From positions 167,109 through 231,108 of IMG/VR virus record IMGVR_UViG_3300029911_000001: DNA of 64,000 bases; one strand, 5' to 3'. Both the position numbers and the translations under genes were made by a program. Position 1 is the first letter of the stretch. Every line of letters starts with the position of its first letter. This document shows positions 3,294-29,598 of the stretch, piece by piece. A model generated the notes under the pieces. It had not been told where the DNA came from. It was given only the letters and a program-made list of their open reading frames with translations, and ran no database searches.

Positions 3294-3307
3294 GTATTAC
3301 ACTGTAG

Positions 3308-4772: not shown

Positions 4773-4824
4773 TGTGTAGTACCCCTACACTCCATGACAA
4801 TAGGTCGAAGAGAGTGAAACAGGG

Positions 4825-14352: not shown

Positions 14353-14806
14353 GCTTTCCCGCCCGAACCCACCGTTGAAGTTTGGGACGGGTCATGTTTA
14401 GGGCTTGTGCTGCGAGAGAAAGGGAGCCGTATTCCACCCCGTTAATGGTGATAGGGGTGGCACGTGGGTGTTCGTTTCCCGCTTTGAATGAGGTAGTAGT
14501 GGGCTTCCCATAAAAGTGATGGCTGTCTCCCTTGGCGTAGGGTCGCTTGGCTATTTTCTTCTTTGCTTTATCCGTGTGAGTTTTACCATAGAAAGGATTT
14601 CCGCTTCCTAAGATGCGGGGTCTAGGTCCGCATAGATTAGCCCGATGTTCAGCCGTCTTGGGCTTCCCTTTTAGCGCATCACTTATGTGTTTATTCCACT
14701 CCAGCGTTCTACTGGTTGATGTGTTCCCACCGTCCCCACCACAGGTAATGTTGTATCCAAGGGTTTGAGTTTGCTGTTTGGCGATAAGTTCCTTATTTGG
14801 GCATTG
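14327..14806 (-). pseudogene. N-terminally truncated GIY-YIG homing endonuclease remnant
   Basis: Start-less 159-codon frame: LGYNITCGGDGG...GNPFYGKTHTDKAKKKI...ITINGVEYGSLSLAAQALN; TGA in frame at 14807-14809. Confidence 0.8.
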
Positions 14807-17772: not shown

Positions 17773-18187
17773 AGAGTACGAAGCAGTATTGAAAGAGTAC
17801 GACCTTCGACAGGCACGGGAAGAGGCTGAGGTCGAAGCTGAATACTACCGGATGGTCAAGCCGATGCTGGAGCAGTACGTCGGTGCTAAGGTATGTGACG
17901 CCACTATCTCTGCCATCACGTCCGATTGCATGAACCTTGCTCGTCACTTGTCGATGAGGTTCAGGGATGAGTACGAAATCCTTCTCGGCTACAACGAGGA
18001 AGACCGGTCTATCAATATCGGCTACAGGATCAAGCCTCGCATCTTCGAACCTAATCTTATCCGGGAGCCTTCTGGATTCACTCGGCTGCTTCCTAAGTAT
18101 GACGACATCACACTCCCGTCATCTTACGACGACCTATATCTAAAGTCACCGGAGCATGAGGAAGAGGAAGAGAGCGAAGAGGAATGA
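17759..18187 (+). CDS. Hypothetical protein
   Basis: Coupled ORF with acidic C-terminus. Confidence 0.65.
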
Positions 18188-18675
18188 CGATGGGGACGGG
18201 TAGACCTAAAAAAGAGAGCACAGAACTCACCTTCTCCTTAGAGAAGGAACAGGAGTTGATGCGTGCTCGGATGGCTGAAAAGTTTCCTTCTCCAAATACC
18301 GTCTCGTTGAGTGCTCAGTTGAACCATCTTGACGAGGTTCCTAGTAGAATCCCGACACCTGAGCCACTTAAAACTAAGGCGGTGCTCTACGCAAGAGTGT
18401 CTACTAAAACACAGAGTCTGGAGAACCAATTACTGGCTCTACGTAAATATGCTGCCCACAAAGGGTTATTGGTGGTAGGAGAATACTCAGACTCTATCCA
18501 CGGCTCTAATTCCATACGAGAGGGGCTAAACACCCTACTATTAGCTGGTAAATGTGGGGAGTTCGGTAAGGTTTTAGTTACAGCCTACGACCGAGTGGCA
18601 CGGGATACTAAACTGTTCCTTCACATCGTAGACATCCTCGGGGGGTGGGGAGTGAAACACCATGGAGTCAAATGA
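18184..18675 (+). CDS. Serine recombinase (resolvase) catalytic domain, C-terminally truncated
   Basis: AVLYARVSTKTQSLENQL, DRVAR; stops about 100 aa after the catalytic Ser. Confidence 0.8.
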   Translation: MTMGTGRPKKESTELTFSLEKEQELMRARMAEKFPSPNTVSLSAQLNHLDEVPSRIPTPEPLKTKAVLYARVSTKTQSLENQLLALRKYAAHKGLLVVGEYSDSIHGSNSIREGLNTLLLAGKCGEFGKVLVTAYDRVARDTKLFLHIVDILGGWGVKHHGVK

Positions 18676-19609
18676 AATGAATGTAACATATCAAAGGGTA
18701 GCAGACACCTTTTCAGGTGAAATCCACCGGCTCTTCTTATCTGAAGACAGTATGAAGGCGGAGTTCTCCAAACAGTTTTCTCATGTAGAGTTTGACAGAA
18801 CCATGCACGGTTCTACCCTTCTCTATAAACTCTTTCGTGACTGCTGGTATGCGACCGGCCCTGAGGTCAAGTGTGAGCCTACAGGCTACGACCGGTTGTT
18901 CGTCTGTCGCAAGCTCTACCATCTTCTCGATTACAATCTGTTCACTCAGGTTCTCCTCAACCTTCAGTCGTACGCTGGCATGTCTTACTACACTGAGGGT
19001 GCCATGAAGGAGATGGACGCTCTCAAGGAGTCGTGGCCGAAGGATGCGAAGCTGAACCCCTTCGAGCCCAAAGTCAAGATGGTGAAGAACGCTACGACCG
19101 ATGAGGAGAAGCGTTACAACAACCTGCTGAGCACGCTCAAGGGTCTGAAGATTATCTCGCAGTTCACTCCGCAGGTAAGCTTCCGCATCAGCCCCATGGG
19201 TTCGACGCCAGCGTTCGCCGACTCTCGCAACATCTCCATGATTGGAATCGGTGGCGACAAGTATCTCAAGACCTTGCCCAACCTCAGCCCCTTCTACATC
19301 CACTGGGCACCGGGCACGACGCCGGAGATGGCTAGGTTCAGCCTCACTGGGTTTACAGTGGAGGGTATCGCATACCCATTCATTTCGAAATCGGGGGGTG
19401 AGATTCTGCAAGAGGTTCTGTTCGCCCGGAAGATTATGGCGGAGGTCTTCGCTCATCATGACATCACTGCTGAAATGTGTGTGATGGTACCCCGCATGAA
19501 CTCCGTATTGATTGTTACGGACAAGGAAGGTATTCACTTGAAGGCTGCGTTCGACAAGCTGAAGGTACAGTACCCGATGCTTGAACTCGCAGAGGGAGGT
19601 CGTGTATGA
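18662..19609 (+). CDS. Hypothetical protein
   Basis: 315 aa ORF with phage-like codon usage. Confidence 0.75.
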   Translation: MESNEMNVTYQRVADTFSGEIHRLFLSEDSMKAEFSKQFSHVEFDRTMHGSTLLYKLFRDCWYATGPEVKCEPTGYDRLFVCRKLYHLLDYNLFTQVLLNLQSYAGMSYYTEGAMKEMDALKESWPKDAKLNPFEPKVKMVKNATTDEEKRYNNLLSTLKGLKIISQFTPQVSFRISPMGSTPAFADSRNISMIGIGGDKYLKTLPNLSPFYIHWAPGTTPEMARFSLTGFTVEGIAYPFISKSGGEILQEVLFARKIMAEVFAHHDITAEMCVMVPRMNSVLIVTDKEGIHLKAAFDKLKVQYPMLELAEGGRV

Positions 19610-19708
19610 TAAAGAAACTGAAGTTCTGCATCGGTTATGCGTGGGCTGCTTGCCGTATGACTTGGGACATGTTGAAGACCCTCGGCAAAGGCTAACGAAA
19701 GAAATTCA

Positions 19709-19745
19709 AAATAAGTGTTTACTTTCTCGAACTTCGTAGTATTAT
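19709..19745 (+). promoter_or_regulatory. Sigma70-like promoter of the Tyr/Leu tRNA block
   Basis: AAATAAGTG-TTTACT-N16-TATTAT; same layout at 24681 and 26609. Confidence 0.7.
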
Positions 19746-19815
19746 GTATAAGAAGTCGCTGCCGGAGCCATCTCTGCACACGCACATGGCCGGGGCAAGA
19801 CAAAAGGAATTGAAA

Positions 19816-19905
19816 ATGAACCGTCTCTCACACAACACGACCCTCGGACTAAGCTTGTATTACCTGCTTAGCAGCGGCCTCGTGCTGTCCGACAGACCCT
19901 CCTAA
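19816..19905 (+). CDS. Putative attenuator leader peptide (Tyr/Leu-rich, 29 aa)
   Basis: MNRLSHNTTLGLSLYYLLSSGLVLSDRPS; SD AAGGA upstream; tandem TAT-TAC, 8 Leu codons. Confidence 0.75.
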   Translation: MNRLSHNTTLGLSLYYLLSSGLVLSDRPS

Positions 19906-19960
19906 CAAGAGCAAGGTTCAAGGATACACGAAGCCGCCCGAAAGGGTGGCTTTTAGTTTT
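19874..19960 (+). promoter_or_regulatory. Antiterminator/terminator switch upstream of tRNA-Tyr
   Basis: Terminator AAGCCGCCC-GAAA-GGGTGGCTT plus U-rich tail (19931-19960); 19874-19884 GCGGCCTCGTG pairs 10/11 with 19927-19937 CACGAAGCCGC. Confidence 0.75.
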
Positions 19961-20047
19961 GGGCAGATGCGTGAGTGGCTAAAACGGGCTGGCTGTAACC
20001 CAGCTTCCCTAGTGGATTCGGAGGTTCAAATCCTCCTCTGCCCACCA
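19961..20047 (+). tRNA. tRNA-Tyr(GTA)
   Basis: GGGCAGA/TCTGCCC acceptor, CT-GTA-AC loop, GTTCAAATC, encoded CCA. Confidence 0.92.
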
Positions 20048-20058
20048 AAATTGAATAC

Positions 20059-20146
20059 GCAAGTAAGGCGACTATCGGTTGGTCGCACCGGGCTGTAAAC
20101 TCGTTGCCCTAAAAAGCCGCTGGGGGTTCGACTCCCTCTACTTGCA
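20059..20146 (+). tRNA. tRNA-Tyr(GTA), second divergent copy
   Basis: GCAAGTA/TACTTGC acceptor, CT-GTA-AA loop, GTTCGACTC; imperfect anticodon stem, no encoded CCA. Confidence 0.72.
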
Positions 20147-20202
20147 CTTTCGTGACTACCGACCTCTTTAAGTAGAGGTATCTCTTGGAGGTCGGTAGGT
20201 TC

Positions 20203-20817
20203 ATGACATTTTTCACAGTGTATCGAACACAGAATCTGGTGAACGGGAGGTACTACTTCGGCGTCCATAAGACCAAAGACCCCTACGATGGGTACCTTGG
20301 GTCGGGTAAGATTTTGAAACGCGCAATAATAAAGTACGGTGAGCCAGCGTTCATCAAGAATCTCTGCTTCATCTTTGACAATCCAGAGGAGGCTTTCGCT
20401 AAGGAGTTTGAACTAATTGAAACGTACCGGCAAGATTCGCTTTGCTACAACCTGAGACAAGGTGGAAGTGGGGGGTTTGATTGGATAAACCGGGAAGGCA
20501 AAGCAGATTATTCAAGGGCAGCGAAAATGTCTCACGGAAGTAAAAGTAAAAGAGACCCCAACCACTATATGAAGATGGTTGAAGGTAGAAGGAAAAAGGG
20601 GTACGGAGTTGCCCCCCAGTTCATAGGCATCTGGTCAGGACGTAAGCATACATCTGAAACCAAAGCCAAGATGGCGTTGGCAGCAAGCTTGAGAGTTGGT
20701 GAAAAGAACTCGCAACATGGGACTTGTTGGGTAACAGACGGTGTTACAAATATGAAGGTGAAGCAATCAGACCTGTCCACGTACCTTGTGGGTAGTTGGA
20801 AACGAGGAAGAGTATAA
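20203..20817 (+). CDS. GIY-YIG (Seg-like) homing endonuclease inside the tRNA cluster
   Basis: VYRTQNLVNGRYYFGVHKT...YLGSG...KYG, YNLRQGGSGG, KHTSETKAKM. Confidence 0.85.
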   Translation: MTFFTVYRTQNLVNGRYYFGVHKTKDPYDGYLGSGKILKRAIIKYGEPAFIKNLCFIFDNPEEAFAKEFELIETYRQDSLCYNLRQGGSGGFDWINREGKADYSRAAKMSHGSKSKRDPNHYMKMVEGRRKKGYGVAPQFIGIWSGRKHTSETKAKMALAASLRVGEKNSQHGTCWVTDGVTNMKVKQSDLSTYLVGSWKRGRV

Positions 20818-21035
20818 TGCAAGTCGTTCAAACGCTGTTGGTACAAGGGAACGCGCAACAGGTAGCTTGGCTCAACGTAGACCCGCGAGTGAAGAAGGGC
20901 TCCGTTGTTACGCTCAAGGACGAACCTGAGAGCGGTCAGTGGGAAGTAGCCGAGCAGTACATGAAGCAGGAAGCTTCGGACATCCAGCGTGGATGGGGCA
21001 ACGACCTTCCCAAGTCGCAGCGGACTGAGCGGTAA
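20817..21035 (+). CDS. Hypothetical protein
   Basis: TAATG-coupled ORF. Confidence 0.6.
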   Translation: MQVVQTLLVQGNAQQVAWLNVDPRVKKGSVVTLKDEPESGQWEVAEQYMKQEASDIQRGWGNDLPKSQRTER

Positions 21036-21071
21036 TTAGCTTTTCCTGCTGTACGGTTTTTAGCTTTTTAC

Positions 21072-21156
21072 GCCCGGATGGCGAAATTGGTAGACGCGGC
21101 AGACTTAGAATCTGTTGTCGCAAGACGTGGGGGTTCGAGTCCCCCTCCGGGCACCA
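21072..21156 (+). tRNA. tRNA-Leu(TAG)
   Basis: GCCCGGA/TCCGGGC, CT-TAG-AA loop, long variable arm, CCA. Confidence 0.95.
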
Positions 21157-21279
21157 AGTTTGAACTTACTATCGTGAGACGATTGCACGCAGAACCCCGT
21201 GTGATTGAGTGAAAGCTGTGGCAGGCGAATTGACGCTAAGGCGATAAGTAACTCAGTCGTTCAAAGTTTTACAAAGTAT

Positions 21280-21369
21280 GCGCGAGTGGTGGAATTGGAA
21301 GACACAGCAGACTCAGAATCTGCCGTCCCGAAAGGGCAACTACGAGTTCGACTCTCGTTTCGCGCACCA
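21280..21369 (+). tRNA. tRNA-Leu(CAG)
   Basis: GCGCGAG/TTCGCGC, CT-CAG-AA loop, long variable arm, CCA. Confidence 0.92.
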
Positions 21370-21382
21370 AAAGTTTAGCAAG

Positions 21383-21464
21383 GCCGATGTGGTGGAATGG
21401 CATACACAGGACACTCAAAGCGTCCCGCGAAAGCATACGAGTTCGACTCTCGTCATCGGCACCA
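21383..21464 (+). tRNA. tRNA-Leu(CAA)
   Basis: GCCGATG/CATCGGC, CT-CAA-AG loop, one anticodon-stem mismatch, CCA. Confidence 0.82.
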
Positions 21465-21476
21465 AAGTTTAGTATT

Positions 21477-21551
21477 GCTCCTATGCTGGAACTGGCATAC
21501 AGCTCTATTGTACATTGCGGGGCGGTGTGATTCGACCCCCATACGTGAGCC
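21477..21551 (+). pseudogene. Degenerate Leu-type tRNA
   Basis: Leu-like D-arm TGCTGGAACTGGCATACAG, TTCGA, partial acceptor pairing; no recognisable anticodon arm. Confidence 0.4.
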
Positions 21552-21723
21552 TTTTATCTCTCACGTCACATTTTCCCGAGAACGCAGTATGGCTTGGTAA
21601 GCTAGTTCCTAGTTGGCTCAAACAACCGGTACTAGCAAGAGACCTGTTCACATTGAAATAAATTGGCATCCGCATACACTGGCATTCGTGTTTTTGAACT
21701 TTCATACCCTAATTGAGGGTGTG

Positions 21724-22266
21724 ATGAGACAATATCGAAACAAGTACAGTAAGGAAAGTCTGGAGCCCATCGTTAGGGACAGCCTATCGGTAGCTGGGGT
21801 GATTGATAAACTCGGATTGAAACAGGCTGGGGGTAATCATAGGCACTTAAAGTTACTTTTCAAAAGGTTCGAAATTGATACTTCCCACTTTACAGGAAGT
21901 ATATGGAACCGGGGGCTCACCGCAGAGACAGACAAACGAGTAAACCGAGGGATTAGACAAAAGTACACAGACGATGAGGCTTTCTGTGAAAATTCACTTC
22001 TTGGGAGTTCTCAACTTAAGCGGAGATTACTTAGGATTGGATGGAAGTATTGTTGTTCTCGTTGTGGGATTTCAGACTGGTTAAGTGAAAAGATTGCACT
22101 ACATCTTGACCATATAAATGGTATCAATGATGACAATCGGCTTTGTAACCTTAGATTTCTTTGCCCAAATTGCCATCAACTAACAGGGACATGGGGTTCG
22201 AGAAACGCGGTCGTGGTGAAACGGCATACACACTACCTTGAGGTGGTAGCGGGGGCAACCCCATGA
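21724..22266 (+). CDS. HNH endonuclease
   Basis: CSRCG...LHLDHING...NRLCNLRFLCPNCH; stop codon lies inside tRNA-Leu(GAG). Confidence 0.88.
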   Translation: MRQYRNKYSKESLEPIVRDSLSVAGVIDKLGLKQAGGNHRHLKLLFKRFEIDTSHFTGSIWNRGLTAETDKRVNRGIRQKYTDDEAFCENSLLGSSQLKRRLLRIGWKYCCSRCGISDWLSEKIALHLDHINGINDDNRLCNLRFLCPNCHQLTGTWGSRNAVVVKRHTHYLEVVAGATP

Positions 22267-22292
22267 GAGTTCAACTCTCTCCGACCGCACCA
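22207..22292 (+). tRNA. tRNA-Leu(GAG)
   Basis: GCGGTCG/CGACCGC, TT-GAG-GT loop, long variable arm, CCA. Confidence 0.92.
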
Positions 22293-22311
22293 AAGTTAAG
22301 TATTATACAGG

Positions 22312-22638
22312 ATGAAGCTCCATTGGAGTCAAGTCCTAGTTCGAAATAGATGCAAGGCACGTGAACCAGCGGCTCGACTTCGAACAGCTATGTTGGAAGC
22401 GGGGATACCACACAAGTGTGAACGCTGTGGGTGTCCTCCTGAATGGCGAGGCAAGCTGCTCGTACTTCAGATTGACCACATAGACGGCGACACTCTCAAT
22501 AACGAGCCTGACAATGTTCGCTTCATCTGTCCGAACTGTCACTCGCAGACACTAAACTTCGGAGCCAAGAACCGCAACCGGCTCACTGAAGCAGGGTTCG
22601 ATGATTTGTATGCTTGGGGAGGTGAGGACTATGAGTAA
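22312..22638 (+). CDS. HNH endonuclease
   Basis: CERCG...LQIDHIDG...NVRFICPNCHS. Confidence 0.88.
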   Translation: MKLHWSQVLVRNRCKAREPAARLRTAMLEAGIPHKCERCGCPPEWRGKLLVLQIDHIDGDTLNNEPDNVRFICPNCHSQTLNFGAKNRNRLTEAGFDDLYAWGGEDYE

Positions 22639-22816
22639 AAGCATCGTGTGCATTCTCGGCATTAGCACCTATGGTGGATTCGAAGCAAAGGACGCTACGC
22701 TGGATAAGCAAGCGGCTCATGAATGGCTGCAAACGGAAACAGCACCGGACACCATGGCTGTCTTCAAGCGGGTTGATTGGAATCTGGTACGGTCAAGCTA
22801 GGGCAGACAAAGTAAT

Positions 22817-22903
22817 GCCGGGATGGTGGAATTGGCAGACACATCGGCCTCAAAAGCCGCCGTTCGCAAGGACATGAGGGTTCGACCCCCTCTCCCGGCA
22901 CCA
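22817..22903 (+). tRNA. tRNA-Leu(CAA), second copy
   Basis: GCCGGGA/TCCCGGC, CT-CAA-AA loop, CCA. Confidence 0.9.
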
Positions 22904-22954
22904 AACAAATATTTGCAATAAATCTGTCCGAAACCGTGTTCACTCCGGTATACT

Positions 22955-23164
22955 GTGGCTGGAGGCTTTTGGATGCCAGCGACAGACCCCACCAAACACA
23001 TCAACGTTACGTTGCCCCATGAGGGCATCGAGTTCCTGACACGGGTACAAGTTTACCTGCGGGACAGGTATGGTCGTGCGGCCAGTAAAGCAGCACGAGC
23101 CAACGTCTCCATCGCTTTGAACTCCATCCGCAAGGAACTTGAAACAAAGGAGCCACAGGCATGA
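22955..23164 (+). CDS. Hypothetical protein
   Basis: 69 aa ORF downstream of TATACT. Confidence 0.5.
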   Translation: MAGGFWMPATDPTKHINVTLPHEGIEFLTRVQVYLRDRYGRAASKAARANVSIALNSIRKELETKEPQA

Positions 23165-23414
23165 GAGTATCCGTCTATCCCATTCTAATCGAAGAAGGCA
23201 AGCCACCCGCGTTCAAAGAAATCAAGCTGCCCAAAGGGTCTCGCATCCTCGGTGGGGTTCAAGCGTAAGGAAGGTCTCGGCTACTACTGGTCTCGGAACC
23301 GTTGGTGGCGGTTCGGTGTTGACGACTACCCCCCAGCCTACCGGGTGTTGTGCTCGAACTGCAACATGAGCGCGTATCGAGGCAATGGTGTGTGTATTCA
23401 CCAGCGAGGCAAGA

Positions 23415-23912
23415 ATGAACCTACCAACTGAAATTCGTAGCTTCTCTGATGACTGGAGCTTCCTGTCTAACTTCTACCCGTGCAAGGTGGTGTTGGATGG
23501 TGTGGAGTATAGTTCGGTGGAGCACGCATATCAGGCGGCGAAGACGCTGAACCTCAAGGAGCGGGAGAAGTTCCTGTACGCTGGCGTCACAGCCGGTCGT
23601 GCGAAGCGGATGGGCGATGCCATCAACAAGTCTGGCAAGCGTCGTGCGGACTGGCTGGAGGTCAACAAGCCTATCATGCTCGACCTGCTCAAGCAGAAAT
23701 TCTATCCGTCGATTTTACGTCGGAAGCTGCTCTGTACGTTCTCTGCGATTCTGATTGAGGGGAACTACTGGCACGACACGTGGTGGGGCGTGTGTGAAGG
23801 CACGTGCAAGGAGCACGGTCCCCATGAACCATATGGGGATAATATCCTAGGTCTGCAACTGATGGAGGTTAGGGCCTACTATGGAACAGGTGAAGGGTGT
23901 CTCAACCGTTAG
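23415..23912 (+). CDS. NADAR (YbiA-like) family protein
   Basis: FLSNFYPC, YSSVEHAYQAAK, LKQKF, LIEGNYWHDTWWG, NILGLQLMEVR. Confidence 0.92.
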   Translation: MNLPTEIRSFSDDWSFLSNFYPCKVVLDGVEYSSVEHAYQAAKTLNLKEREKFLYAGVTAGRAKRMGDAINKSGKRRADWLEVNKPIMLDLLKQKFYPSILRRKLLCTFSAILIEGNYWHDTWWGVCEGTCKEHGPHEPYGDNILGLQLMEVRAYYGTGEGCLNR

Positions 23913-24127
23913 GCTGCTACGCTCCTCCGCGACCTGCGAGGCACAGCGACTGGAGTTCCAGTTCCAAGGGCATTGATTGCGGCTTCCAGTCGGTCTATCT
24001 CAACCGCCAGTTCGTTTCGCAGCGTCTTGATGCCTCTGTCTTTCATGCCGGATAAAGCCTCGTGAGAAACGCGGAGGCGAACGATTTCAGCCGTAAGGTT
24101 GTCACGCAGGGTATTGATGTCCATCAC
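23909..24127 (-). CDS. Small basic protein, paralogue of 24243-24536
   Basis: DINTLRDNLTAEIVRL helix, Arg-rich tail. Confidence 0.65.
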   Translation of the reverse strand: MMDINTLRDNLTAEIVRLRVSHEALSGMKDRGIKTLRNELAVEIDRLEAAINALGTGTPVAVPRRSRRSVAA

Positions 24128-24242
24128 TACTCCTTTTACAATATCCAGTATACCTAACCATAGGTCAATGTAAAGTAAAATTTACCCCCATGAGAAAACG
24201 GGATGGAGCCGGATTCTCATGGGGGTTGGATCGTTCGTTGGT

Positions 24243-24536
24243 CTACGCCGCTTTAGACTGGGCTGCATTAACTTCCACAGTGGCGACAGCGGCCTTCTGC
24301 TTAGCCCAACGGGCCTTCTGCGAAGCAGAGATGCGTGCCCGAAGCTCGGGAGTCATCTCCCGACGGACACGGTGGATACCCTTCTTCTCACCCTTAGCAA
24401 TCATCGTCCGGGTCGTCTTGCGGTGCTTCACAGGGGCATGGTTGGGGACTTCGCTGGAGTTGGCGAGGGCATCGTAAGCAGCCTGAAGCCTTGCGATGTC
24501 GGTTGCGATTTCTGCACGTAACGATTCGATATTCAT
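24243..24536 (-). CDS. Putative nucleoid-associated small basic protein
   Basis: MNIESLRAEIATDIARLQAAYDAL...REMTPELRARISASQKARWAKQK; SD AGGAG. Confidence 0.7.
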   Translation of the reverse strand: MNIESLRAEIATDIARLQAAYDALANSSEVPNHAPVKHRKTTRTMIAKGEKKGIHRVRREMTPELRARISASQKARWAKQKAAVATVEVNAAQSKAA

Positions 24537-24680
24537 TGAGGTTTCTCCTGTTTTTCTATACGTTCTCCCTTTTGCGTATGGGTCTGTAACCGAGGGCTGT
24601 GGTGTGTTCAACCACACTCCCAGTGACTGTGTAGATACTTGGTGTACCACTAAGGTTGCCCCCTCCCGTTGTTTTTTGAA

Positions 24681-24716
24681 AAATAGTGTTGCATTTTTCG
24701 GACTATCGGGTATTAT
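24681..24716 (+). promoter_or_regulatory. Sigma70-like promoter of the Pro tRNA block
   Basis: AAATAGTG-TTGCAT-N16-TATTAT; ATG 6 nt downstream (leaderless). Confidence 0.75.
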
Positions 24717-24722
24717 GTAGAT

Positions 24723-24788
24723 ATGAAGTTCACGAGTCCAAACCCGTCGTTCCCACCGTGCCCTACCCTGCACGGGCCTGACCTCTAG
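24723..24788 (+). CDS. Putative Pro-rich leader peptide (21 aa)
   Basis: MKFTSPNPSFPPCPTLHGPDL; 6 Pro codons (CCA, CCG, CCA, CCG, CCT, CCT). Confidence 0.65.
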   Translation: MKFTSPNPSFPPCPTLHGPDL

Positions 24789-24941
24789 CGAGTTCAGCGT
24801 CCCGTGCGGCCTCGCCGGGATGTGAATGTGATTTTGATTTGGAGTCTAGCAAGTTCCCCGATAACACGCCCGAACCGTTCTCGCGAAAAGCGTACGGTTC
24901 GGCTCTCCTTCAAAAGACCATCCCGGTCACTATTGCTTTCT

Positions 24942-25018
24942 CGGAGAGTGGCCAAGATGGAAAGGCTCTGGTTTCGGGAACCAGAAATTCGTGAGTTCGA
25001 ACCTCACCTCTCCGACCA
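24942..25018 (+). tRNA. tRNA-Pro(CGG)
   Basis: CGGAGAG/CTCTCCG, CTGGT-TT-CGG-GA-ACCAG, CCA. Confidence 0.93.
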
Positions 25019-25030
25019 AACTTTTACCCT

Positions 25031-25654
25031 TCAAAGGAGGATCACTCCTTTATCCAACTCATCATGGTGGTTCTTACACAAGGCGATGAGGTTGCAAGGG
25101 TCATTGATTTCACCGACCAACGCAGTTGAAGGGAAAGCTCTGATGGGTTTGATGTGGCAACAGTCCACATGGAAGGTATACCCACATACTTGACACATAC
25201 GGGCTCTAACCTTGAAGAGAACCCCTCTAGCGTGTTCTCGGATTCGTTCTAATGGGCACGCCTTCTTGGTTCTTAGCGGGAGCAATGACATTGGGATGTA
25301 ATTACACTCGGGGCATCGAGTGGTAGAACGGTGTCTGTTTACCTTGAAGAAGAGGGTTCCACAAGAAGTACAGTTACGGGGTTTTGGTTTGTTTCGCGGG
25401 AATGTCGTTCGTGCCATATTGTACTTGGCACCACACGATTGGTTGCAGAACTTTTTTCTCTTGACTTGTTGAAACTTTGAGCGAGTCATCTCTTCAAGAG
25501 GTATCAAGATAGCAGTATCACACTGTAGGCAACGGGTTGGATTTTCATTGTACCCTTCCATTCGTTGCTGGGCTCTTTGTCGGTTCAACACGTTTGCATT
25601 TTTACCGGCAGCTTTGATTTGAGCCAATCTGGTTGAGCTTAGTTTGTTTTTCAT
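25031..25654 (-). CDS. HNH endonuclease between the two tRNA-Pro genes
   Basis: CQVCG...DCCHIKP...NLIALCKNHH; N-terminal Cys clusters. Confidence 0.85.
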   Translation of the reverse strand: MKNKLSSTRLAQIKAAGKNANVLNRQRAQQRMEGYNENPTRCLQCDTAILIPLEEMTRSKFQQVKRKKFCNQSCGAKYNMARTTFPRNKPKPRNCTSCGTLFFKVNRHRSTTRCPECNYIPMSLLPLRTKKACPLERIREHARGVLFKVRARMCQVCGYTFHVDCCHIKPIRAFPSTALVGEINDPCNLIALCKNHHDELDKGVILL

Positions 25655-25693
25655 TTTTCAACTCCCTGTTTACTGATTAGGTAGTTGAAAAAT

Positions 25694-25767
25694 CGGGGTG
25701 TAGCTGGAAGGTCAAGCCCGTGTTTTGGGAACACGAGACGAGGTTTCGATTACCTCCACCCCGACCA
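25694..25767 (+). tRNA. tRNA-Pro(TGG)
   Basis: CGGGGTG/CACCCCG, CGTGT-TT-TGG-GA-ACACG, CCA. Confidence 0.9.
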
Positions 25768-25780
25768 ATTTTGAACTATA

Positions 25781-25824
25781 TCACCGGAAGCAGCGGAGAG
25801 ATTCGAATCCTATCACCCCGACCA
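25781..25824 (+). pseudogene. Orphan tRNA 3' fragment
   Basis: ATTCGAATCC...CACCCCGACCA duplicates the 3' end of tRNA-Pro(TGG). Confidence 0.65.
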
Positions 25825-25836
25825 AGTTTGAAGTAT

Positions 25837-26000
25837 GCCAGCGACGACCGCTGAGCCTTTATAGCCCCTATCCGAGGGGTGTTGGGCTCATGTCACGCCG
25901 ATACCGTGCTCATCATGAGAGGGATACTCTATGAGTGTTGCGACGAACGGTGCCGACGACGCAAGTCCGGGGCAACTTCGGCCCCGCTAAGGGGCCGGAC
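25837..26000 (+). ncRNA. Candidate structured ncRNA
   Basis: Several GC-rich helices: CTCAT/ATGAG with AGAG/CTCT, GTCCGG/CCGGAC, GGCCCC-GCTAA-GGGGCC. Confidence 0.45.
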
Positions 26001-26125
26001 AAGTTTTGAACTTTGGTAGTATTATATTTAGTGGAGCCGGACTGCGGTAGTCCCACAGGACTGTACGACGTGAAGCCCTCCACACATCACACGGTCGTCG
26101 TCCGGGGTGTTAGGGGAGAAGTATC

Positions 26126-26593
26126 ATGAATTTTAAGGTGACTCATTGGCATCTCGCTAAGGGACGCGGCGATGGCGATAACACCGAAGTCGTAGTCCGT
26201 CTGGAAGAGTCATCGTGGTTCTGGCACTTCGCTGAGTTCATCGGTGAGCACGTATTCTTCACCATCTGCGATTGGTGCCACAAGGTTCCCCTCCCTAAGT
26301 TCGTATGCAACTGGGAACGCAACTGGGGCGGTGACAAGGAAGACGGCGTACATAAGCTGGAAGACTGGTATGGTGCCGACCTTGGTTGTCTCTGGCACGT
26401 CTACGTAGAGTCCCCCGTCCTTCAGTGGGTGTGGAAGCATAAGTTCATTGAACAGGCCACAGAGTTCCGTATGACCCTTGCCGAGGCCCGTGAAAAGTTC
26501 AAAGGCACACAGGCTTACAAGCTGGAGTGGATTGAAGAAGATGTCAAGCGTGACGCTGCATACGCTGCGGAACACCCCGAAGATAACGATTAG
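26126..26593 (+). CDS. Trp-rich hypothetical protein
   Basis: 155 aa, SD GGGGAG. Confidence 0.7.
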   Translation: MNFKVTHWHLAKGRGDGDNTEVVVRLEESSWFWHFAEFIGEHVFFTICDWCHKVPLPKFVCNWERNWGGDKEDGVHKLEDWYGADLGCLWHVYVESPVLQWVWKHKFIEQATEFRMTLAEAREKFKGTQAYKLEWIEEDVKRDAAYAAEHPEDND

Positions 26594-26608
26594 TCAGAAA
26601 TAATGCAA

Positions 26609-26645
26609 AAATAAGTGTTGCAAAGTTTTCTGACTTTGGTATTAT
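26609..26645 (+). promoter_or_regulatory. Sigma70-like promoter directly upstream of tRNA-Met
   Basis: AAATAAGTG-TTGCAA-N16-TATTAT. Confidence 0.75.
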
Positions 26646-26649
26646 TAGT

Positions 26650-26730
<81 letters not shown>

Positions 26731-26750
26731 AGAAGTAAAGTAAGGGTACA

Positions 26751-26849
26751 ATGGCAACTCAGGTTCTTCGCTTCAAGTGCGGCTTCTGCGATAAGGAAAT
26801 GCGTTCCCAAGGGCAACGCACCAAGCACGCAAAGGTCTGCACCAAATGA
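26751..26849 (+). CDS. 32-aa C2HC zinc-finger microprotein
   Basis: MATQVLRFKCGFCDKEMRSQGQRTKHAKVCTK = C-x2-C-x12-H-x3-C. Confidence 0.65.
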   Translation: MATQVLRFKCGFCDKEMRSQGQRTKHAKVCTK

Positions 26850-27012
26850 CCGTGGTAAATTGAAACTACTCTTCCGGGAGTAGGGTGGCTCAAATCCGCC
26901 CCATGGTCTATAACGCTGCACTAACAGAAGGACGACCCGATAGACTCACTGTTTTATAAGGAGTGTTCATGGGAAACATCGCTATGTCCTCACTCTTGCC
27001 CACTCGGGCAAC

Positions 27013-27047
27013 CTGAGTGAGTCCCTGAGTGAGTCCCTGAGTGAGTC
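27013..27047 (+). repeat. 12-bp tandem repeat x3
   Basis: CTGAGTGAGTCC x3, last copy imperfect. Confidence 0.92.
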
Positions 27048-27086
27048 TAAAGGGTCGCCGGTCTACCCGAATAATGACGGCTAAAA

Positions 27087-27248
27087 ATGAAACCACAAGT
27101 AAAGCTTACACGTCGTGAACGCCGGAAGTTGAACAAGCCGAAGAACAATGGCTGCAAGTATGTTTGCTTGACTTGCAACACACCATTCACCTTGAGCACT
27201 GCAATGGATGAGAAGCACTACTGCTCATCTAAGTGCCAACCGAAGTAA
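27087..27248 (+). CDS. 53-aa Cys-rich microprotein
   Basis: Basic N-terminus, CLTC...YCSSKC. Confidence 0.6.
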   Translation: MKPQVKLTRRERRKLNKPKNNGCKYVCLTCNTPFTLSTAMDEKHYCSSKCQPK

Positions 27249-27369
27249 GTTCCCGTTGAATCGGGCTTGGTACTGAAAACCAGCGAAGCAGGGTTGGTCT
27301 CTATGGGTGCAGTCTAGCGCATAGAGTTGGGAGAGGTCGTCGCGACGGCCAATCCCACCCCAGAGTTTT

Positions 27370-27426
27370 GGCGGGATAGAGGAGTTGGTTCCTTGACGGG
27401 CTCATAACCCGTAGACGGTCGGTTCG
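27370..27426 (+). pseudogene. 5' 57 nt of a tRNA-Met(CAT) ending at the T-loop
   Basis: GGCGGGA, D-arm, ACGGG-CT-CAT-AA-CCCGT, GTCGGTTCG; no matching 3' strand found nearby. Confidence 0.72.
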
Positions 27427-27842
27427 GAGGACATTCGGGAGGCTACTAGTGGCTCCCACCCGGAGGTCTTGTTGGCGAGAAGCCTCCCCCTCCGGTTTAT
27501 TTTGAGTGGTGCCGTTGGTCGCCTAGCGTCCGACATCCATGGGACAACATGGTATCGAGTCGCCGATGCGATTCGAGGCAACCTGTAGATGACGAAGAAG
27601 GTTATCCTGTGGTGTAGCCGGTAGGCGTTACAGGCAAGTCCCTTCGTCGGTATCATCCGGCACAATTTTTGTTGGGGTCTCACTACGAAGAGCGGCGGCG
27701 TAAGAGGGTGTGAGGCGAGAACCGAAGCATCGACCGTGCAGCGTACCGGATGAAACAGCCGGACTATAGTGGTGGCTTACAACAGTAATGTTGTCGGTGC
27801 GAGTGCTCATCCAAAGCCATGGAACCCCAAACAAAATAATTA

Positions 27843-27870
27843 TTGCAACTGTCTCAGAGTCGTGTATACT
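27843..27870 (+). promoter_or_regulatory. Sigma70-like promoter
   Basis: TTGCAA-N16-TATACT. Confidence 0.65.
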
Positions 27871-28056
27871 ACGTGTACGTTCTTGGATGTAAACCAAGGG
27901 AGTGGGCTCAGTTTCTTGCATCTGTAAATGCAAGTGGAGGTCGGGGCGGGTTGCCCGGTCAAGTTTCCAGCTTTAGAAGAAAGCTGGTGGTGGAGGGTGT
28001 CACGGGAAACCGTGACGCCCCCGTAGTTCAAATCTATCTTAGGAGAACAACGTCCA

Positions 28057-28254
28057 ATGGCAACAATCCTCGAATTCAACGGCTGTCCCAAATGGCGTGT
28101 AGTGAAAGAAGGGGAAGCAACCTTCCTGCACTGCCCGACGACCCAGACTCGCATCCCTGTCACTCTTGGCGAACTCCCCGAAGGTGCAAGCTTCGAGGAA
28201 GGTGATGAAAACCTCCCGACCGGTACCGAACTCGAAATCGCAGTCACGGTCTAA
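28057..28254 (+). CDS. Hypothetical protein
   Basis: 65 aa, SD AGGAG, biased codon usage. Confidence 0.7.
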   Translation: MATILEFNGCPKWRVVKEGEATFLHCPTTQTRIPVTLGELPEGASFEEGDENLPTGTELEIAVTV

Positions 28255-28261
28255 CCGAGAA

Positions 28262-28391
28262 ACGCTTGTAGCTCAGAATTACTCTGCGAGGCGGACGAGG
28301 AAGGTACCGACGACTTCGGCTAGACAGAGGAAGCCTAGAGCACCGGGGTTCTAATCCCGGAGGTCGCAGGAGAGGCCCTGCCAAGCGTACC
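28262..28391 (+). ncRNA. tRNA-like RNA with a ~60-nt insertion in the D-loop
   Basis: ACGCTTG/CAAGCGT acceptor, GCTC/GAGC D-stem, CCGGG/CCCGG anticodon stem, GCAGG/CCTGC T-stem. Confidence 0.65.
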
Positions 28392-28397
28392 TTTTAT

Positions 28398-28509
28398 GAG
28401 GGAATGGATAGACTCTGACTTCTCATCTGACATAAGACCAGTCAGGCAGCGTAACTCAGATGAGGCATCGGCCAGAGGAACGTCCGTGAAATCCCGCACT
28501 CCCTCTCCA
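28398..28509 (+). ncRNA. CCA-terminated tRNA-like RNA of unknown class
   Basis: GAGGGA/TCCCTC-T-CCA ends; internal CTCATCTGA/TCAGATGAG helix. Confidence 0.5.
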
Positions 28510-28563
28510 ATTTGTTTGCAACTTTTTCCAACTATCTGCGTCTAAGTAAGAGAACACATCCCC

Positions 28564-28614
28564 ATGAACCCCATCTACCCAACTCCCGGCGCACGATTTA
28601 CTGAGACCCTCTAA
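28564..28614 (+). CDS. Putative leader peptide (16 aa) upstream of tRNA-Phe
   Basis: MNPIYPTPGARFTETL; stop codon in the loop of ACCCTC-TAAGC-GAGGGT. Confidence 0.4.
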   Translation: MNPIYPTPGARFTETL

Positions 28615-28637
28615 GCGAGGGTGTTTCGTATTTCTGC

Positions 28638-28713
28638 GGCCTTGTAGCTCAGATGGTAGAGCACTACGCTGAAGACGTAGGTGCCGCGGTCTCGAAAGCC
28701 GCCAAGGCCACCA
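28638..28713 (+). tRNA. tRNA-Phe(GAA)
   Basis: GGCCTTG/CAAGGCC, CTACG-CT-GAA-GA-CGTAG, CCA; atypical T-loop. Confidence 0.88.
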
Positions 28714-29542
28714 ACTTTTTAATTCTTTTCTTCACAGCACTCCCCGACACCCCTAATAGTCTCCCCGTTGCTTCAAATCCAGTAGTGTCCACTTGTGCTT
28801 GGAGCAGGGCTAAGCTCGGCCATTCAATCTTGTCTTTATGGTTGAGTTTGGCTGCACAGGACTGGCACCGTTTATACCCGGACGTGATGGTGACTCCACA
28901 ACTGCACTGATTTGTCGGTCGTGCCCCCATTAGCCTAATAAAGTCTTTTCCATACTTAGCTGTCACATAAGTCAGGGTCGGCTCCATCTCTTTCTTTCCC
29001 AGTACAGACAGAACCCCACCAAACTGCGCTATTTTGGCTCGATTGCGGTTGTCCATCCACCCCTTCACTTCGATGTAGGCTCCTGTAGGGAGAATAAAGT
29101 CAGGGTAGAACTTGTGTGTCCTGCCTTCGAACGAGTAAGTCAACCCTAGTGTGTTCCGACTGAACCCCACTCCGTGGTCGAGGTTGTAGATGACCCACGC
29201 AAGCTCCCATGAAGAATCGCACCAGTAGCCTTTGTACCAGCCCTTCTTGCCCCGACCAGACCCAGCCCTTATCCCTCCGGTGTTAGGGTTCCATCGTTTA
29301 GGGCCACCATACTTCGCCTTCCTTTCATCCGGGCTCAGGGTATCAATAAATCTGCGGACAGAAATCGCGACGGCGACTGAGTTCTTTCTCACTCGGTCAT
29401 CTGTGTCCTTTGTCAGGCCACGGTTCCACGCGGCCCCACAGTGGTTGATAGGGGCTCCCTCGTGGCTGTATCGAATGTGATTCCTCAGGCCAAACTTGTG
29501 ACAAGATTTCCCGCACTGAGGGCAGTTGATATGTGTATCCAT
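28664..29542 (-). CDS. PD-(D/E)xK endonuclease with zinc fingers (homing-type)
   Basis: CDSSWELAW, FYPDF...YIEVKGW; N-terminal CPQC...H; C-terminal HTH-like segment. Confidence 0.75.
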   Translation of the reverse strand: MDTHINCPQCGKSCHKFGLRNHIRYSHEGAPINHCGAAWNRGLTKDTDDRVRKNSVAVAISVRRFIDTLSPDERKAKYGGPKRWNPNTGGIRAGSGRGKKGWYKGYWCDSSWELAWVIYNLDHGVGFSRNTLGLTYSFEGRTHKFYPDFILPTGAYIEVKGWMDNRNRAKIAQFGGVLSVLGKKEMEPTLTYVTAKYGKDFIRLMGARPTNQCSCGVTITSGYKRCQSCAAKLNHKDKIEWPSLALLQAQVDTTGFEATGRLLGVSGSAVKKRIKKLVALAAFETAAPTSSA

Positions 29543-29598
29543 ACCATGGACTGCGTAGTCCGAAAATCAAACCAGTGCAAAGACCAGTATTAACTACC

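Follow-up and report, generated by a model that had tools for sequence, protein, structure and literature searches.

A likely leader-peptide attenuator in front of Tyr and Leu tRNA genes in a soil jumbo phage

Why should a phage place a short open reading frame and a strong transcription terminator directly in front of its own tRNA genes? The arrangement lies in a 64,000-nucleotide stretch of a soil jumbo phage (the window; IMG/VR virus record IMGVR_UViG_3300029911_000001). An earlier note, made from the sequence alone, had proposed that the reading frame is a leader whose Tyr and Leu codons match the anticodons encoded downstream, and that a ribosome stalled at these codons allows read-through into the tRNA genes. 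We therefore examined the anatomy of the locus, its conservation and its alternative RNA folds. Every element listed in the note was confirmed at its position, and every sequence-level prediction that could be tested held. All features described below are on the plus strand of the window.

A consensus scan identified a promoter-like site (19696-19745), consisting of an A/T-rich upstream stretch, a -35 element TTTACT (19718-19723) and, after a 16-nt spacer, a -10 element TATTAT (19740-19745), with a predicted transcription start near 19752. Its core, TCGAACTTCNNAGTATTAT, is identical upstream of the homologous leader in L007/L010, which include a 463-kb relative (L numbers are our labels for the loci compared), and the same promoter type lies in front of other tRNA genes in the window. 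Minimum-free-energy folding predicted a hairpin in the 5' UTR (19755-19801; GUCGCUGCCGG...CCGGGGCAAGAC) that leaves the ribosome-binding site single-stranded, and, by eye, L026 and L083 carry a similar CUGCCGG...CCGGAG stretch. A Shine-Dalgarno sequence, AAGGA (19804-19808), is found 7 nt before the ATG of a leader ORF of 29 codons plus TAA (19816-19905, with the TAA at 19903-19905), which encodes MNRLSHNTTLGLSLYYLLSSGLVLSDRPS.

The ORF is followed by an intrinsic terminator (19930-19960) with a 10-bp stem, GAAGCCGCCC/GGGTGGCTTT, and a GAAA loop (19930-19953), and a tail, TTTTAGTTTT, that ends one base before tRNA-Tyr. Folded alone, the terminator gave -17.7 kcal/mol. The tRNA genes were identified with ARAGORN and confirmed with Rfam (RF00005). 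Two tRNA-Tyr(GTA) genes (19961-20047 and 20059-20147) are followed by tRNA-Leu(TAG) (21072-21156), tRNA-Leu(CAG) (21280-21369), tRNA-Leu(CAA) (21383-21464), tRNA-Leu(GAG) (22207-22292) and a second tRNA-Leu(CAA) (22817-22903), which is the last gene of the cluster. No tRNA-Leu(TAA) is present. A terminator-like hairpin follows at 22943-22964. Also inside the cluster are a homing-endonuclease-like gene carrying a NUMOD3 motif (20203-20817), for which the Pfam match was weak and below the curated cut-off, and a gene for a conserved 72-aa protein (20817-21035), which is 61% identical to a protein encoded between the leader and the tRNAs in L007. Two HNH endonuclease genes (21724-22266 and 22312-22638; Pfam PF01844) lie on either side of tRNA-Leu(GAG).

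We next asked whether the codon content of the leader exceeded chance. The leader contains the Leu codons CTC (three times), CTA, TTG, CTG (twice) and CTT, but no TTA, along with the tandem Tyr codons TAT-TAC. Those at 19825-19869, upstream of the antiterminator strand, are CTC 19825, CTC 19843, CTA 19849, TTG 19855, TAT 19858, TAC 19861, CTG 19864 and CTT 19867, and at least one codon is present for each of the five tRNA species downstream. Ten of 28 leader codons, and 8 of 17 before the antiterminator strand, are cognate to the downstream tRNAs, against a background of 0.114 (p=2.6e-4 for the 17 codons). Among about 4,800-5,000 windows of the same length cut from the long ORFs of the stretch, 0.04% (whole leader) and 0% (first 17 codons; none of 4,989) matched both this count and the 5/5 coverage of tRNA species. 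However, Ser codons are also enriched in this leader (6 of 28), although the cluster has no tRNA-Ser, and two of the eight Leu codons (19879 and 19885) lie within the antiterminator strand, where a stall would favour termination.

The note had claimed that 19874-19884, in the 3' part of the ORF, pairs at 10 of 11 positions with 19927-19937, which overlaps the 5' arm of the terminator, and that this pairing is extended by TGTCC/GGATA. This pairing is real. The two strands are 19874-19890 (segment 2, GCGGCCTCGTGCTGTCC) and 19922-19937 (segment 3, GGATACACGAAGCCGC), and RNAduplex gave -25.2 kcal/mol, compared to -9.6±2.6 kcal/mol for 500 dinucleotide shuffles, none of which was as good. The hairpin 19874-19937 folded at -27.6 kcal/mol, and folds of truncated transcripts were in agreement. 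Importantly, we also detected a pairing that the note had missed. An upstream segment (19833-19846; segment 1) pairs with 19874-19887, and the resulting hairpin (19833-19890; -15.6 kcal/mol) carries the Tyr codons at its apex, completing a classical four-segment layout. The apical hairpin itself (19849-19871; CUAAGC-UUGUAUUACCU-GCUUAG; -5.6 kcal/mol) has both Tyr codons in its loop and may act as a pause or synchronising hairpin. Its sequence is identical in the leaders of one family (family A), while a second family (family B) has a hairpin at the same place, of which only the inner C-G and U-G pairs are kept in all 17 sequences.

To determine whether relatives keep the leader, we first searched without reference to it. 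All four lineages found through a neighbouring protein carry the leader in front of their Tyr/Leu cluster, as does Tunturiibacter phage Tunturi_5, the only cultured relative, which was found through tRNA similarity. Pattern searches of viral and metagenome contigs raised the total to 23 distinct homologous or analogous leaders, although most of these were found with a pattern taken from the leader itself, and that set is biased towards keeping the core. Each has an ATG, 5-8 Leu codons and 1-3 Tyr codons, and wherever the contig reaches that far, a canonical terminator and a Tyr/Leu tRNA cluster follow. The first tRNA lies 55-72 nt after the stop codon, except in two lineages where a small protein gene intervenes. 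The ORF behaves as a translated frame, in that the ATG and an upstream SD-like purine stretch (AGGA/GAGA type) are kept, ORF length is fixed within each family, and indels come in multiples of three. In some lineages the 5' UTR is so short that the mRNA may be nearly leaderless.

Codon content also followed tRNA content. Leaders are enriched for cognate codons, typically 7-8 of 13-17 before segment 2 (p about 1e-4 to 4e-4), and every tRNA species was covered in every locus with at least four Tyr/Leu tRNAs visible. TTA occurs in leaders mainly where a tRNA-Leu(TAA) follows: three loci have both, eight have neither, two have only the tRNA and none has only the codon (Fisher p=0.035). L074 and Tunturi_5 have a tRNA-Leu(TAA) but no TTA codon in the leader, and the leader of Tunturi_5 has CTA but no tRNA-Leu(TAG) follows. 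Tunturi_5 has three tRNA clusters, each behind its own leader and terminator. Each leader is enriched only for the codons of its own cluster (14/31, 24/36 and 33/48 codons; p=2e-4, 1e-3 and 1.5e-4) and depleted for those of the other two, and the leaders cover 8/9, 14/15 and 15/15 tRNA species, respectively. The joint count and coverage were matched by 0 to 0.1% of windows from real coding sequences. The first of these leaders gains Cys and Ser codons where its cluster holds Cys and Ser tRNAs.

The terminator, antiterminator and anti-antiterminator pairings recurred with different sequences in different families. In all 23 leaders, the conformer with segment 1 paired to segment 2 plus the terminator and the antiterminator conformer are alternatives that differ by 3-16 kcal/mol, and segment 2 is paired upstream in the nascent RNA with a probability of 0.53-0.89. 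Across 17 family B sequences, 83% of cells were paired in the terminating conformer, compared to 32-52% when partners were slid, and fifteen cells showed changes on both sides, which was reached by 0 of 500 shuffles. In the antiterminator, 70.6% were paired compared to 34-63%, with five pairs changed on both sides, reached by 8 of 500 shuffles. The top base pair of the terminator covaries (GC 5, AU 4, CG 3, UA 2). However, one outlier, L034, showed no antiterminator better than shuffles, and for several G-rich family B leaders the duplex was not clearly better than shuffles (37-99 of 500 as good).

We then masked a ribosome footprint at successive codons and refolded the RNA. For the window leader with its full 5' UTR, the probability that the 5' arm of the terminator is sequestered was 0.69-0.88 with the A site at codons 2-16, which include CTA, TTG, TAT and TAC, and fell to 0.26-0.30 at codons 18-22. 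With the footprint masked, a ribosome at the Leu/Tyr codons leaves the antiterminator intact, and one further downstream frees the 5' arm. The same drop was clear in most of the other leaders and in Tunturi_5 leaders 1-3, but was weak or absent in L026, L034, L073 and L093. At thermodynamic equilibrium with the whole terminator present, the terminator wins in most sequences wherever the ribosome is placed, and in the window leader its probability was 0.97 with the ribosome at TAT. A switch of this kind therefore depends on kinetic, co-transcriptional order, as it does for the trp operon. In addition, a footprint at the stop codon does not cover the core of segment 2 (mask 19888-19914), so that blocking there would have to be steric.

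Taken together, and in the absence of expression data of any kind, the most likely explanation, in which we have reasonably good confidence, is that this locus is a ribosome-mediated transcription attenuator gating an operon of seven class II tRNA genes. In the terminating form, segment 1 pairs with segment 2, and segment 3 pairs with segment 4 (19944-19953) to form the terminator, while in the read-through form segment 2 pairs with segment 3. The Leu and Tyr codons lie in and next to segment 1 and the apex of the 1:2 hairpin. We infer that ribosomes load at the free SD and ATG and, if the matching charged tRNA is scarce, stall at these codons, keeping segment 1 unpaired and leaving segment 2 free to capture segment 3 as it emerges, so that RNA polymerase runs into the tRNA genes. 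If decoding is fast, the ribosome would have moved onto segment 2 or the stop codon by the time segment 3 appears, and transcription would stop at 19954-19960. Without any ribosome the 1:2 plus 3:4 form is the more stable one, and the default state is therefore probably off. Since the leader carries at least one codon for each tRNA species of the operon, a shortage of any one would switch on the whole cluster, and the products would then relieve the stall, providing a demand-driven negative feedback on tRNA supply. The interpretation in the earlier note is thus supported, although the trigger it suggested, depletion by host anticodon nucleases or starvation, remains speculation.

We considered other interpretations, all of which appear unlikely. 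The leader and terminator could regulate the operon through translation but without codon specificity, such that translation of any short ORF sets a fixed or globally tuned level of termination, reflecting general transcription-translation coupling or translation capacity, and the Leu/Tyr richness is a by-product of RNA structure. Indeed, several conserved codons, including CTA and CTG-CTT-AGC, lie in conserved helices, so structure could explain part of the nucleotide conservation, and equilibrium folds respond weakly to ribosome position in many sequences. However, structure cannot explain why three leaders in the Tunturi_5 genome each match their own tRNA cluster and are depleted for the other two, or why Cys, Ser or TTA codons appear where the matching tRNAs do. 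Moreover, positions between the Leu codons vary freely (S, T, A, Y) while Leu and Tyr stay.

Somewhat less likely is an RNA-only element, in which an untranslated leader acts as a riboswitch-like or T-box-like sensor, or as a processing or stability signal for the tRNA precursor. The conserved secondary structure and alternative helices are compatible with this, and translation of the leader is inferred. Conservation of the ATG, SD-like stretch, frame and ORF length argues against it, as does the fact that amino-acid and codon composition follows the tRNA set across leaders that share no sequence. Rfam matched only the tRNAs in this region, and there is no T-box-like specifier loop or tRNA-acceptor-binding bulge.

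A switch of the opposite sign, in which stalling promotes termination and the phage shuts off tRNA synthesis when translation is compromised, is also doubtful. The two Leu codons within segment 2 would favour it, the short helices after the stop codon in L034 could be read this way, and in L011 a Pro/Met leader overlaps its own terminator-like hairpin. In the window and in nearly all homologues, however, the cognate codons are concentrated upstream of segment 2, where a footprint frees segment 2 for the antiterminator, and negative feedback is the logic of every known leader-peptide attenuator. Least likely is a small, partly hydrophobic peptide with its own function, with a hairpin that simply ends that gene or the upstream operon, independently transcribed tRNA genes and a coincidental codon match, because, although the peptide core LSLSLYYLLS is conserved and small hydrophobic peptides are common in phages, and although the third leader of Tunturi_5 was annotated as an ordinary protein (gp308), the C-terminal halves differ between families while the RNA pairing is kept, the leader travels with the tRNA cluster and not with the upstream gene, the terminator abuts the first tRNA with no room for a separate promoter, and the chance of the codon match, which recurs independently, is about 1e-3 to 1e-4 or lower per leader.

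Leader-peptide attenuation itself is well established, but we found no description of its use for tRNA genes in the literature searched. The leaders of enterobacterial amino-acid operons (trpL, hisL, leuL, thrL and pheL), and especially the multivalent ilvGMEDA leader, which senses Leu, Val and Ile together, share with this locus a promoter-proximal short ORF rich in regulatory codons, four RNA segments forming 1:2, 2:3 and 3:4 helices, and an intrinsic terminator before the structural genes, with the position of the ribosome choosing the fold. Here, however, the element is viral, the regulated genes encode tRNAs and not biosynthetic enzymes, and what would be sensed, decoding by a tRNA, is the direct product of the operon. 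The leader carries one or a few codons per isoacceptor, including synonymous codons read by different tRNAs, rather than a run of one codon, and has no sequence homology to those leaders. The pheST (pheM) attenuator of E. coli likewise controls a component of the translation machinery and responds to the supply of charged tRNA-Phe, but it is bacterial, senses a single amino acid, and pheST encodes the aminoacyl-tRNA synthetase and not the tRNA. T-box riboswitches are terminator/antiterminator switches that read the state of a specific tRNA and control translation-related genes, but a T-box binds uncharged tRNA directly through a specifier codon and the acceptor end, without a ribosome or an ORF.

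Finally, we compared the locus with the tRNA clusters of phages T4 and T5, where tRNA genes are also clustered on one strand and interspersed with homing-endonuclease genes. The scan that ranked the leaders first in the window and in Tunturi_5 found no cognate-codon-rich short ORF followed by a terminator upstream of the T4 or T5 clusters. In T5, many promoters sit directly in front of individual tRNAs.

The sequence at 19696-19960 reads as the earlier note had described it. A sigma-70-like promoter, TTTACT-16-TATTAT, lies at 19718-19745 and is preceded by an A/T-rich stretch. The 5' UTR of about 64 nt folds into a hairpin (19755-19801), which leaves the Shine-Dalgarno sequence AAGGA (19804-08), located 7 nt before the ATG at 19816, in an unpaired stretch. 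The leader ORF of 29 codons (19816-19905) encodes MNRLSHNTTLGLSLYYLLSSGLVLSDRPS. An upstream extension of this frame to the ATG at 19744, which would give a 53-aa ORF, was rejected since that ATG overlaps the -10 box. The intrinsic terminator at 19930-19960 consists of a 10-bp stem, GAAGCCGCCC-GAAA-GGGTGGCTTT, followed by the T-tract TTTTAGTTTT ending at 19960, with a folding energy of -17.7 kcal/mol. ARAGORN and Rfam placed tRNA-Tyr(GTA) at 19961, followed by a second Tyr(GTA) and by Leu(TAG), Leu(CAG), Leu(CAA), Leu(GAG) and Leu(CAA), ending at 22903. A terminator-like hairpin (CTCCGG...CTGGAG, then GCTTTTGG) at 22943-22972 lies 40 nt after the last tRNA-Leu, and could mark the end of the Tyr/Leu operon. 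The cluster also contains a homing-endonuclease-like gene with a weak NUMOD3 match, two HNH genes and a conserved 72-aa protein gene. Neighbouring genes encode a protein with a serine-recombinase (resolvase) N-terminal domain (18184-18675), a NADAR-domain protein (23385-23912), and a 315-aa protein (18662-19609) with no Pfam match.

We next asked whether the codon content of the leader could have arisen by chance. The leader uses CTC x3, CTA, TTG, CTG x2, CTT, TAT and TAC but no TTA, and the cluster has no tRNA-Leu(TAA). Ten of the 28 sense codons, and 8 of the 17 that precede the antiterminator strand, are cognate to the downstream tRNAs, against a background of 0.114 in the window's own long ORFs (binomial p=7e-4 and 2.6e-4, respectively). 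On comparison with about 4,800-5,000 windows of the same length cut from those ORFs, only 0.04% (whole leader) and none (first 17 codons) reached both that count and the coverage of all five tRNA species. Intriguingly, Ser codons are also enriched in this leader, though the cluster has no tRNA-Ser. The pairing of 19874-19890 with 19922-19937, which would exclude the terminator, scored -25.2 kcal/mol, while 500 dinucleotide shuffles of the 3' part of the ORF averaged -9.6±2.6 and none was as good. The 5' part of the ORF paired with the same target at only -9.0.

The RNA shows the four-segment layout of classical attenuators. Segment 1 (19833-46) pairs with segment 2 (19874-87) to give a hairpin of -15.6 kcal/mol, the apex of which is a smaller hairpin, CUAAGC/GCUUAG, with TAT-TAC in the loop. 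Segment 2 can instead pair with segment 3 (-27.6 kcal/mol for 19874-19937), and segment 3 can instead pair with segment 4 to form the terminator. Over the region from the ATG to the terminator, the conformer containing the 1:2 and 3:4 helices scored -45.1 kcal/mol, and the antiterminator conformer -39.1. To monitor the effect of a translating ribosome, we folded the transcript as it exists before the 3' arm of the terminator is made, starting from the predicted transcription start and masking a ribosome footprint from A-site -15 to +11. With the A site at codons 2-16, which include CTA, TTG, TAT and TAC, the 5' arm of the terminator was sequestered with a probability of 0.69-0.88, and with the A site at codons 18-22, on segment 2, the probability was 0.26-0.30. 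This is the direction proposed in the earlier note, in which a stall at Leu/Tyr codons gives read-through and full translation gives termination, although two Leu codons lie inside segment 2. However, when the complete leader and terminator were folded at equilibrium with ribosome masks, the results were mixed or contrary, including for the window, because the terminator dominates once it is present and wins almost everywhere. The model therefore depends on the order of co-transcriptional folding, as it does for trp, and we used the truncated transcripts and the conformer energies in place of the equilibrium folds. The free energy gained by pairing of the terminator's 5' arm, compared with shuffles, also proved uninformative, since a real switch has an alternative partner for segment 2 which makes this quantity small, and direct duplex energies were used instead.

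The element is not a T-box riboswitch. An Rfam search of 18500-30000 at E<=1 gave no match to the T-box family (RF00230) and returned only tRNAs, one weak chance match, and a match to the wcaG RNA motif (RF01761) at 27907-28002. The wcaG match, between the tRNA-Met and tRNA-Phe genes, scored 42.2 bits, just above the gathering score of 42.

We then looked for relatives without reference to the leader. The neighbouring 315-aa protein picked up three further lineages in IMG/VR, at 71%, 52% and 56% identity. Locus L007, from a 463-kb contig, has the same promoter core, the leader MNRVSLSLSLLYSLLSGVGGGVFNG and a terminator, followed by the 72-aa protein gene and tRNAs Tyr, Tyr, Leu, Leu, an odd 90-nt tRNA, Leu and Leu. 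This odd tRNA (L088/L007 8796-8885) is of class II type, and ARAGORN called it Phe with anticodon AAA. Locus L026, from a 332-kb contig, has the leader MTRVSLSLALLYTLLSGGGSGVFNG and a terminator ending 3 nt before tRNA-Tyr, with a different gene lying upstream. ARAGORN also reported odd tRNAs with two-base '(ag)' anticodons in L026 and in a further locus, L087. The 71% lineage has its leader further downstream (L036/L076). Searches for more unbiased relatives using the 72-aa cluster protein and a tRNA-Tyr pattern returned only lineages already in hand, and a search for the promoter motif in viral contigs gave mostly matches inside coding sequence.

The conserved core TTGTATNNCCTNCTTAGC, searched in viral contigs, and the same core plus the terminator arm, searched in metagenome contigs, raised the total to 23 distinct leaders, counting Tunturiibacter phage Tunturi_5. 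These fall into family A (that of the window), families B1 and B2, the outlier L034 and Tunturi_5. All have an ATG and 23-32 codons, and most have an SD-like purine stretch, though in some the -10 box is so close to the ATG that the mRNA may be nearly leaderless. All have 5-8 Leu codons, always including CTA, TTG and CTT or CTC and nearly always CTG, along with 1-3 Tyr codons. A terminator was present in the 23 leader regions folded, and is canonical wherever the contig continues. The first tRNA lies 55-72 nt after the stop codon, with two exceptions where a small protein gene intervenes. The length of the ORF is fixed within each family, and indels between families are multiples of three. While the residues between the Leu codons vary (S, T, A, Y) and the C-terminal peptide differs between families, the ability of that part to pair with the 5' arm of the terminator is kept (-19 to -27 kcal/mol). 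Fourteen of the 23 had at most 12 of 500 shuffles as good, but L034 failed this test and has no convincing antiterminator.

In every locus with at least four Tyr/Leu tRNAs visible, each tRNA species has a cognate codon in the leader. TTA codons occur where a tRNA-Leu(TAA) follows, in that three loci have both, eight have neither, two have the tRNA only and none has the codon only (Fisher p=0.035). Within family A the match is four out of four. The two loci that have tRNA-Leu(TAA) without a TTA codon in the leader are unexplained.

RNAalifold on all 21 aligned leaders returned only the terminator and a small hairpin around the stop codon, because the families are out of register in the non-coding part. 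We used an alignment of 17 family-B sequences. In the terminating conformer 83% of cells were paired, against 32-52% when partners were slid, and fifteen cells had changes on both sides, reached by 0 of 500 shuffles. One 1:2 pair splits GC 5 / UG 5, and the top terminator pair shows four pair types. Segment 2 is paired upstream in the nascent RNA of all 23 leaders. In the antiterminator 70.6% were paired against 34-63%, with five pairs changed on both sides, reached by 8 of 500 shuffles. This covariation is modest, and the sequences are related to one another.

The strongest test came from a cultured relative. Tunturi_5 (PP885688.1; host Tunturiibacter psychrotolerans X4BP1) is the only GenBank phage that matches the window's tRNA-Tyr and the 315-aa protein (39.6% identity). 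The paper describing it reports 43 tRNA genes and says nothing about leaders (PMC11924767). Its tRNAs lie mainly in three clusters, and each is preceded by a short ORF and an intrinsic terminator (6823-6990 and 19174-19385 of the stretch L100 of PP885688.1, and 3146-3303 of the stretch L072). Leader 1, MKTLCLSSYCLSSSLSLSDGWDLRTGRDADMI, precedes tRNAs Leu, Cys, Leu, Leu, Tyr, Leu and Ser x3, and its residues 4-18 use only L, C, S and Y. Leader 2, MQHVSTFRFAVPATAGNPAGQQGTNACDTGGGKVVKW, precedes Asn, Gln x2, Gly, Thr x3, Pro, His, Ala x3 and Phe. Leader 3, MKQILKQLGHDFDIRGKRGVVVDTWDITIRGERKWSDVRDMRVLRERPV, precedes Trp, Asp, Met x2, Lys x2, Val x2, Arg x4, Glu x2, Ile and Gly. None of the three is recognised as such in GenBank, where two are unannotated and the third is listed as hypothetical protein gp308. 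Importantly, counting cognate codons for every leader against every cluster gave a clean diagonal of 14/31, 24/36 and 33/48 (p=2e-4, 1e-3 and 1.5e-4), and every off-diagonal cell was at or below background. Coverage of tRNA species was 8/9, 14/15 and 15/15, and the joint count and coverage were matched by 0 to 0.1% of real CDS windows of the same genome. All three comparisons were made within one genome, so codon usage cannot explain the pattern. Folding with ribosome masks gave the same profile as in the window for all three leaders. Leader 1 shares CTT-AGC-GAC-GG...TGG...GAC with family A leaders, and therefore looks like a divergent homologue whose codon content has changed along with the tRNA content of its cluster.

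To determine the scope of this arrangement, we performed an automated scan for ORFs of 12-60 codons within 450 nt upstream of each tRNA cluster and scored them for cognate codons. The leaders ranked first in the window and in Tunturi_5, and the next unrelated ORFs scored p of about 0.4 or worse. The same scan found nothing comparable upstream of the T4 or T5 clusters, indicating that the design is not general to phage tRNA clusters. In T5 (AY543070.1; locus 14628-14756 of the stretch L111), T5.070 is a 42-aa ORF with 5 Cys in a CxCxxC...CxxC pattern, like a zinc ribbon, that ends 5 nt before tRNA-Cys with no terminator between them, which is probably a coincidence. A scan of 185,579 bacterial and archaeal genomes for the leader pattern gave three hits, none in Acidobacteriota. 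One of these is the same contig as the metagenome locus L082, whose frame is not leader-like, and we take all three as chance, although the other two were not inspected, and saw no sign of a host or prophage copy.

Taken with this independent comparative evidence, which supports the interpretation in the earlier note, we consider it likely that the element is a ribosome-mediated attenuator of the trp/his/leu/ilv/pheST type, with translation of the leader, termination at 19954-60, the sign of the switch and the trigger being inferred. Three things are new, namely the target (tRNA genes), the sensing of the operon's own product at the decoding step, and a leader that lists one or a few codons per isoacceptor. 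Full-text literature searches, which did not cover most subscription-journal papers and are not proof of absence, found no description of attenuation of tRNA genes in phages or in bacteria. Attenuation has so far been tied to amino-acid biosynthesis, aminoacyl-tRNA synthetases, pyrimidine genes and antibiotic resistance, and here it would act on stable RNA genes with a product-level feedback loop. More broadly, and with somewhat less certainty, leader-peptide attenuation may be used as a modular "codon checklist" for viral tRNA gene arrays, in which each tRNA cluster of these Acidobacteriota-type jumbo phages sits behind its own short ORF holding at least one codon for nearly every tRNA species in that cluster. 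The decoding capacity of the infected cell, codon by codon, would then decide whether the phage transcribes its own tRNAs. This would be the first case in which tRNA genes are the target of ribosome-mediated attenuation, and the first direct feedback from decoding to tRNA gene transcription.

Why phages carry tRNA genes has been debated for decades, and the leading ideas are codon compensation and replacement of host tRNAs destroyed by defence systems. Nothing has been known about whether phages adjust tRNA output to need. An attenuator whose leader lists the codons of the tRNAs behind it implies that the phage measures decoding speed for exactly those codons and makes its tRNAs on demand. A shortage of charged tRNA of any cause would stall the ribosome, but the most sensible signal for a phage is low abundance of those tRNAs, because making more tRNA does not help in amino-acid starvation. 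Loss of host tRNA, rising codon demand late in infection, and tRNA-cleaving defences (context: PMC10264068) are all possible triggers. The design, with a promoter, about 25-50 codons and a terminator, is compact and modular, and could serve as a synthetic sensor of the availability of specific tRNAs.

The arrangement extends to other tRNA clusters, probably including a second unit in this window, for Pro, Met and Phe tRNAs. A promoter (TTGCAT...TATTAT, 24683-24715) is followed almost at once by the ATG at 24723, and the ORF MKFTSPNPSFPPCPTLHGPDL, running to the TAG at 24788, has 6 Pro (CCA x2, CCG x2, CCT x2) and 2 Phe codons. It lies upstream of tRNA-Pro(CGG) at 24942 and Pro(TGG) at 25694, with Met and Phe tRNAs further on. 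Homologues are found in L076 (MSFTRPTRSFRPCPMLHGTEVH) and in L088 (MNLMRPFTMFRPCMPTMRRETIL), whose cluster is Pro x4, Gln, Met x3 and Phe x2. In the window and L076, GCACGGG of the ORF can pair with CCCGTGC, the 5' arm of a conserved hairpin CCCGTGCGGCcNcGCCGGG, but no canonical U-tract follows, and how this unit works is unclear. The promoter belongs to a recurring phage type, with an AAAATA(A/G)TGTTGCA-like upstream part and then (G)TATTAT, seen at 19700-19745, 24683-24715, 25996-26025 and 26600-26645. The one at 26618-26645 sits directly in front of tRNA-Met (26650) with no leader, so not every tRNA in this phage is behind an attenuator. Another phage, L011 (IMGVR_UViG_3300016750_000653), has the short ORF MATKIPTMRPQPRVLGVSEGD about 145-79 nt upstream of its Pro/Met tRNA cluster, with CCA, CCG, CCC and an internal ATG, that is, one codon for each of the Pro(TGG), Pro(CGG), Pro(GGG) and Met tRNAs that follow. 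Here the terminator-like hairpin CCCCGAG-TG-CTCGGGG-TTTCT lies inside the ORF, which would imply a different logic.
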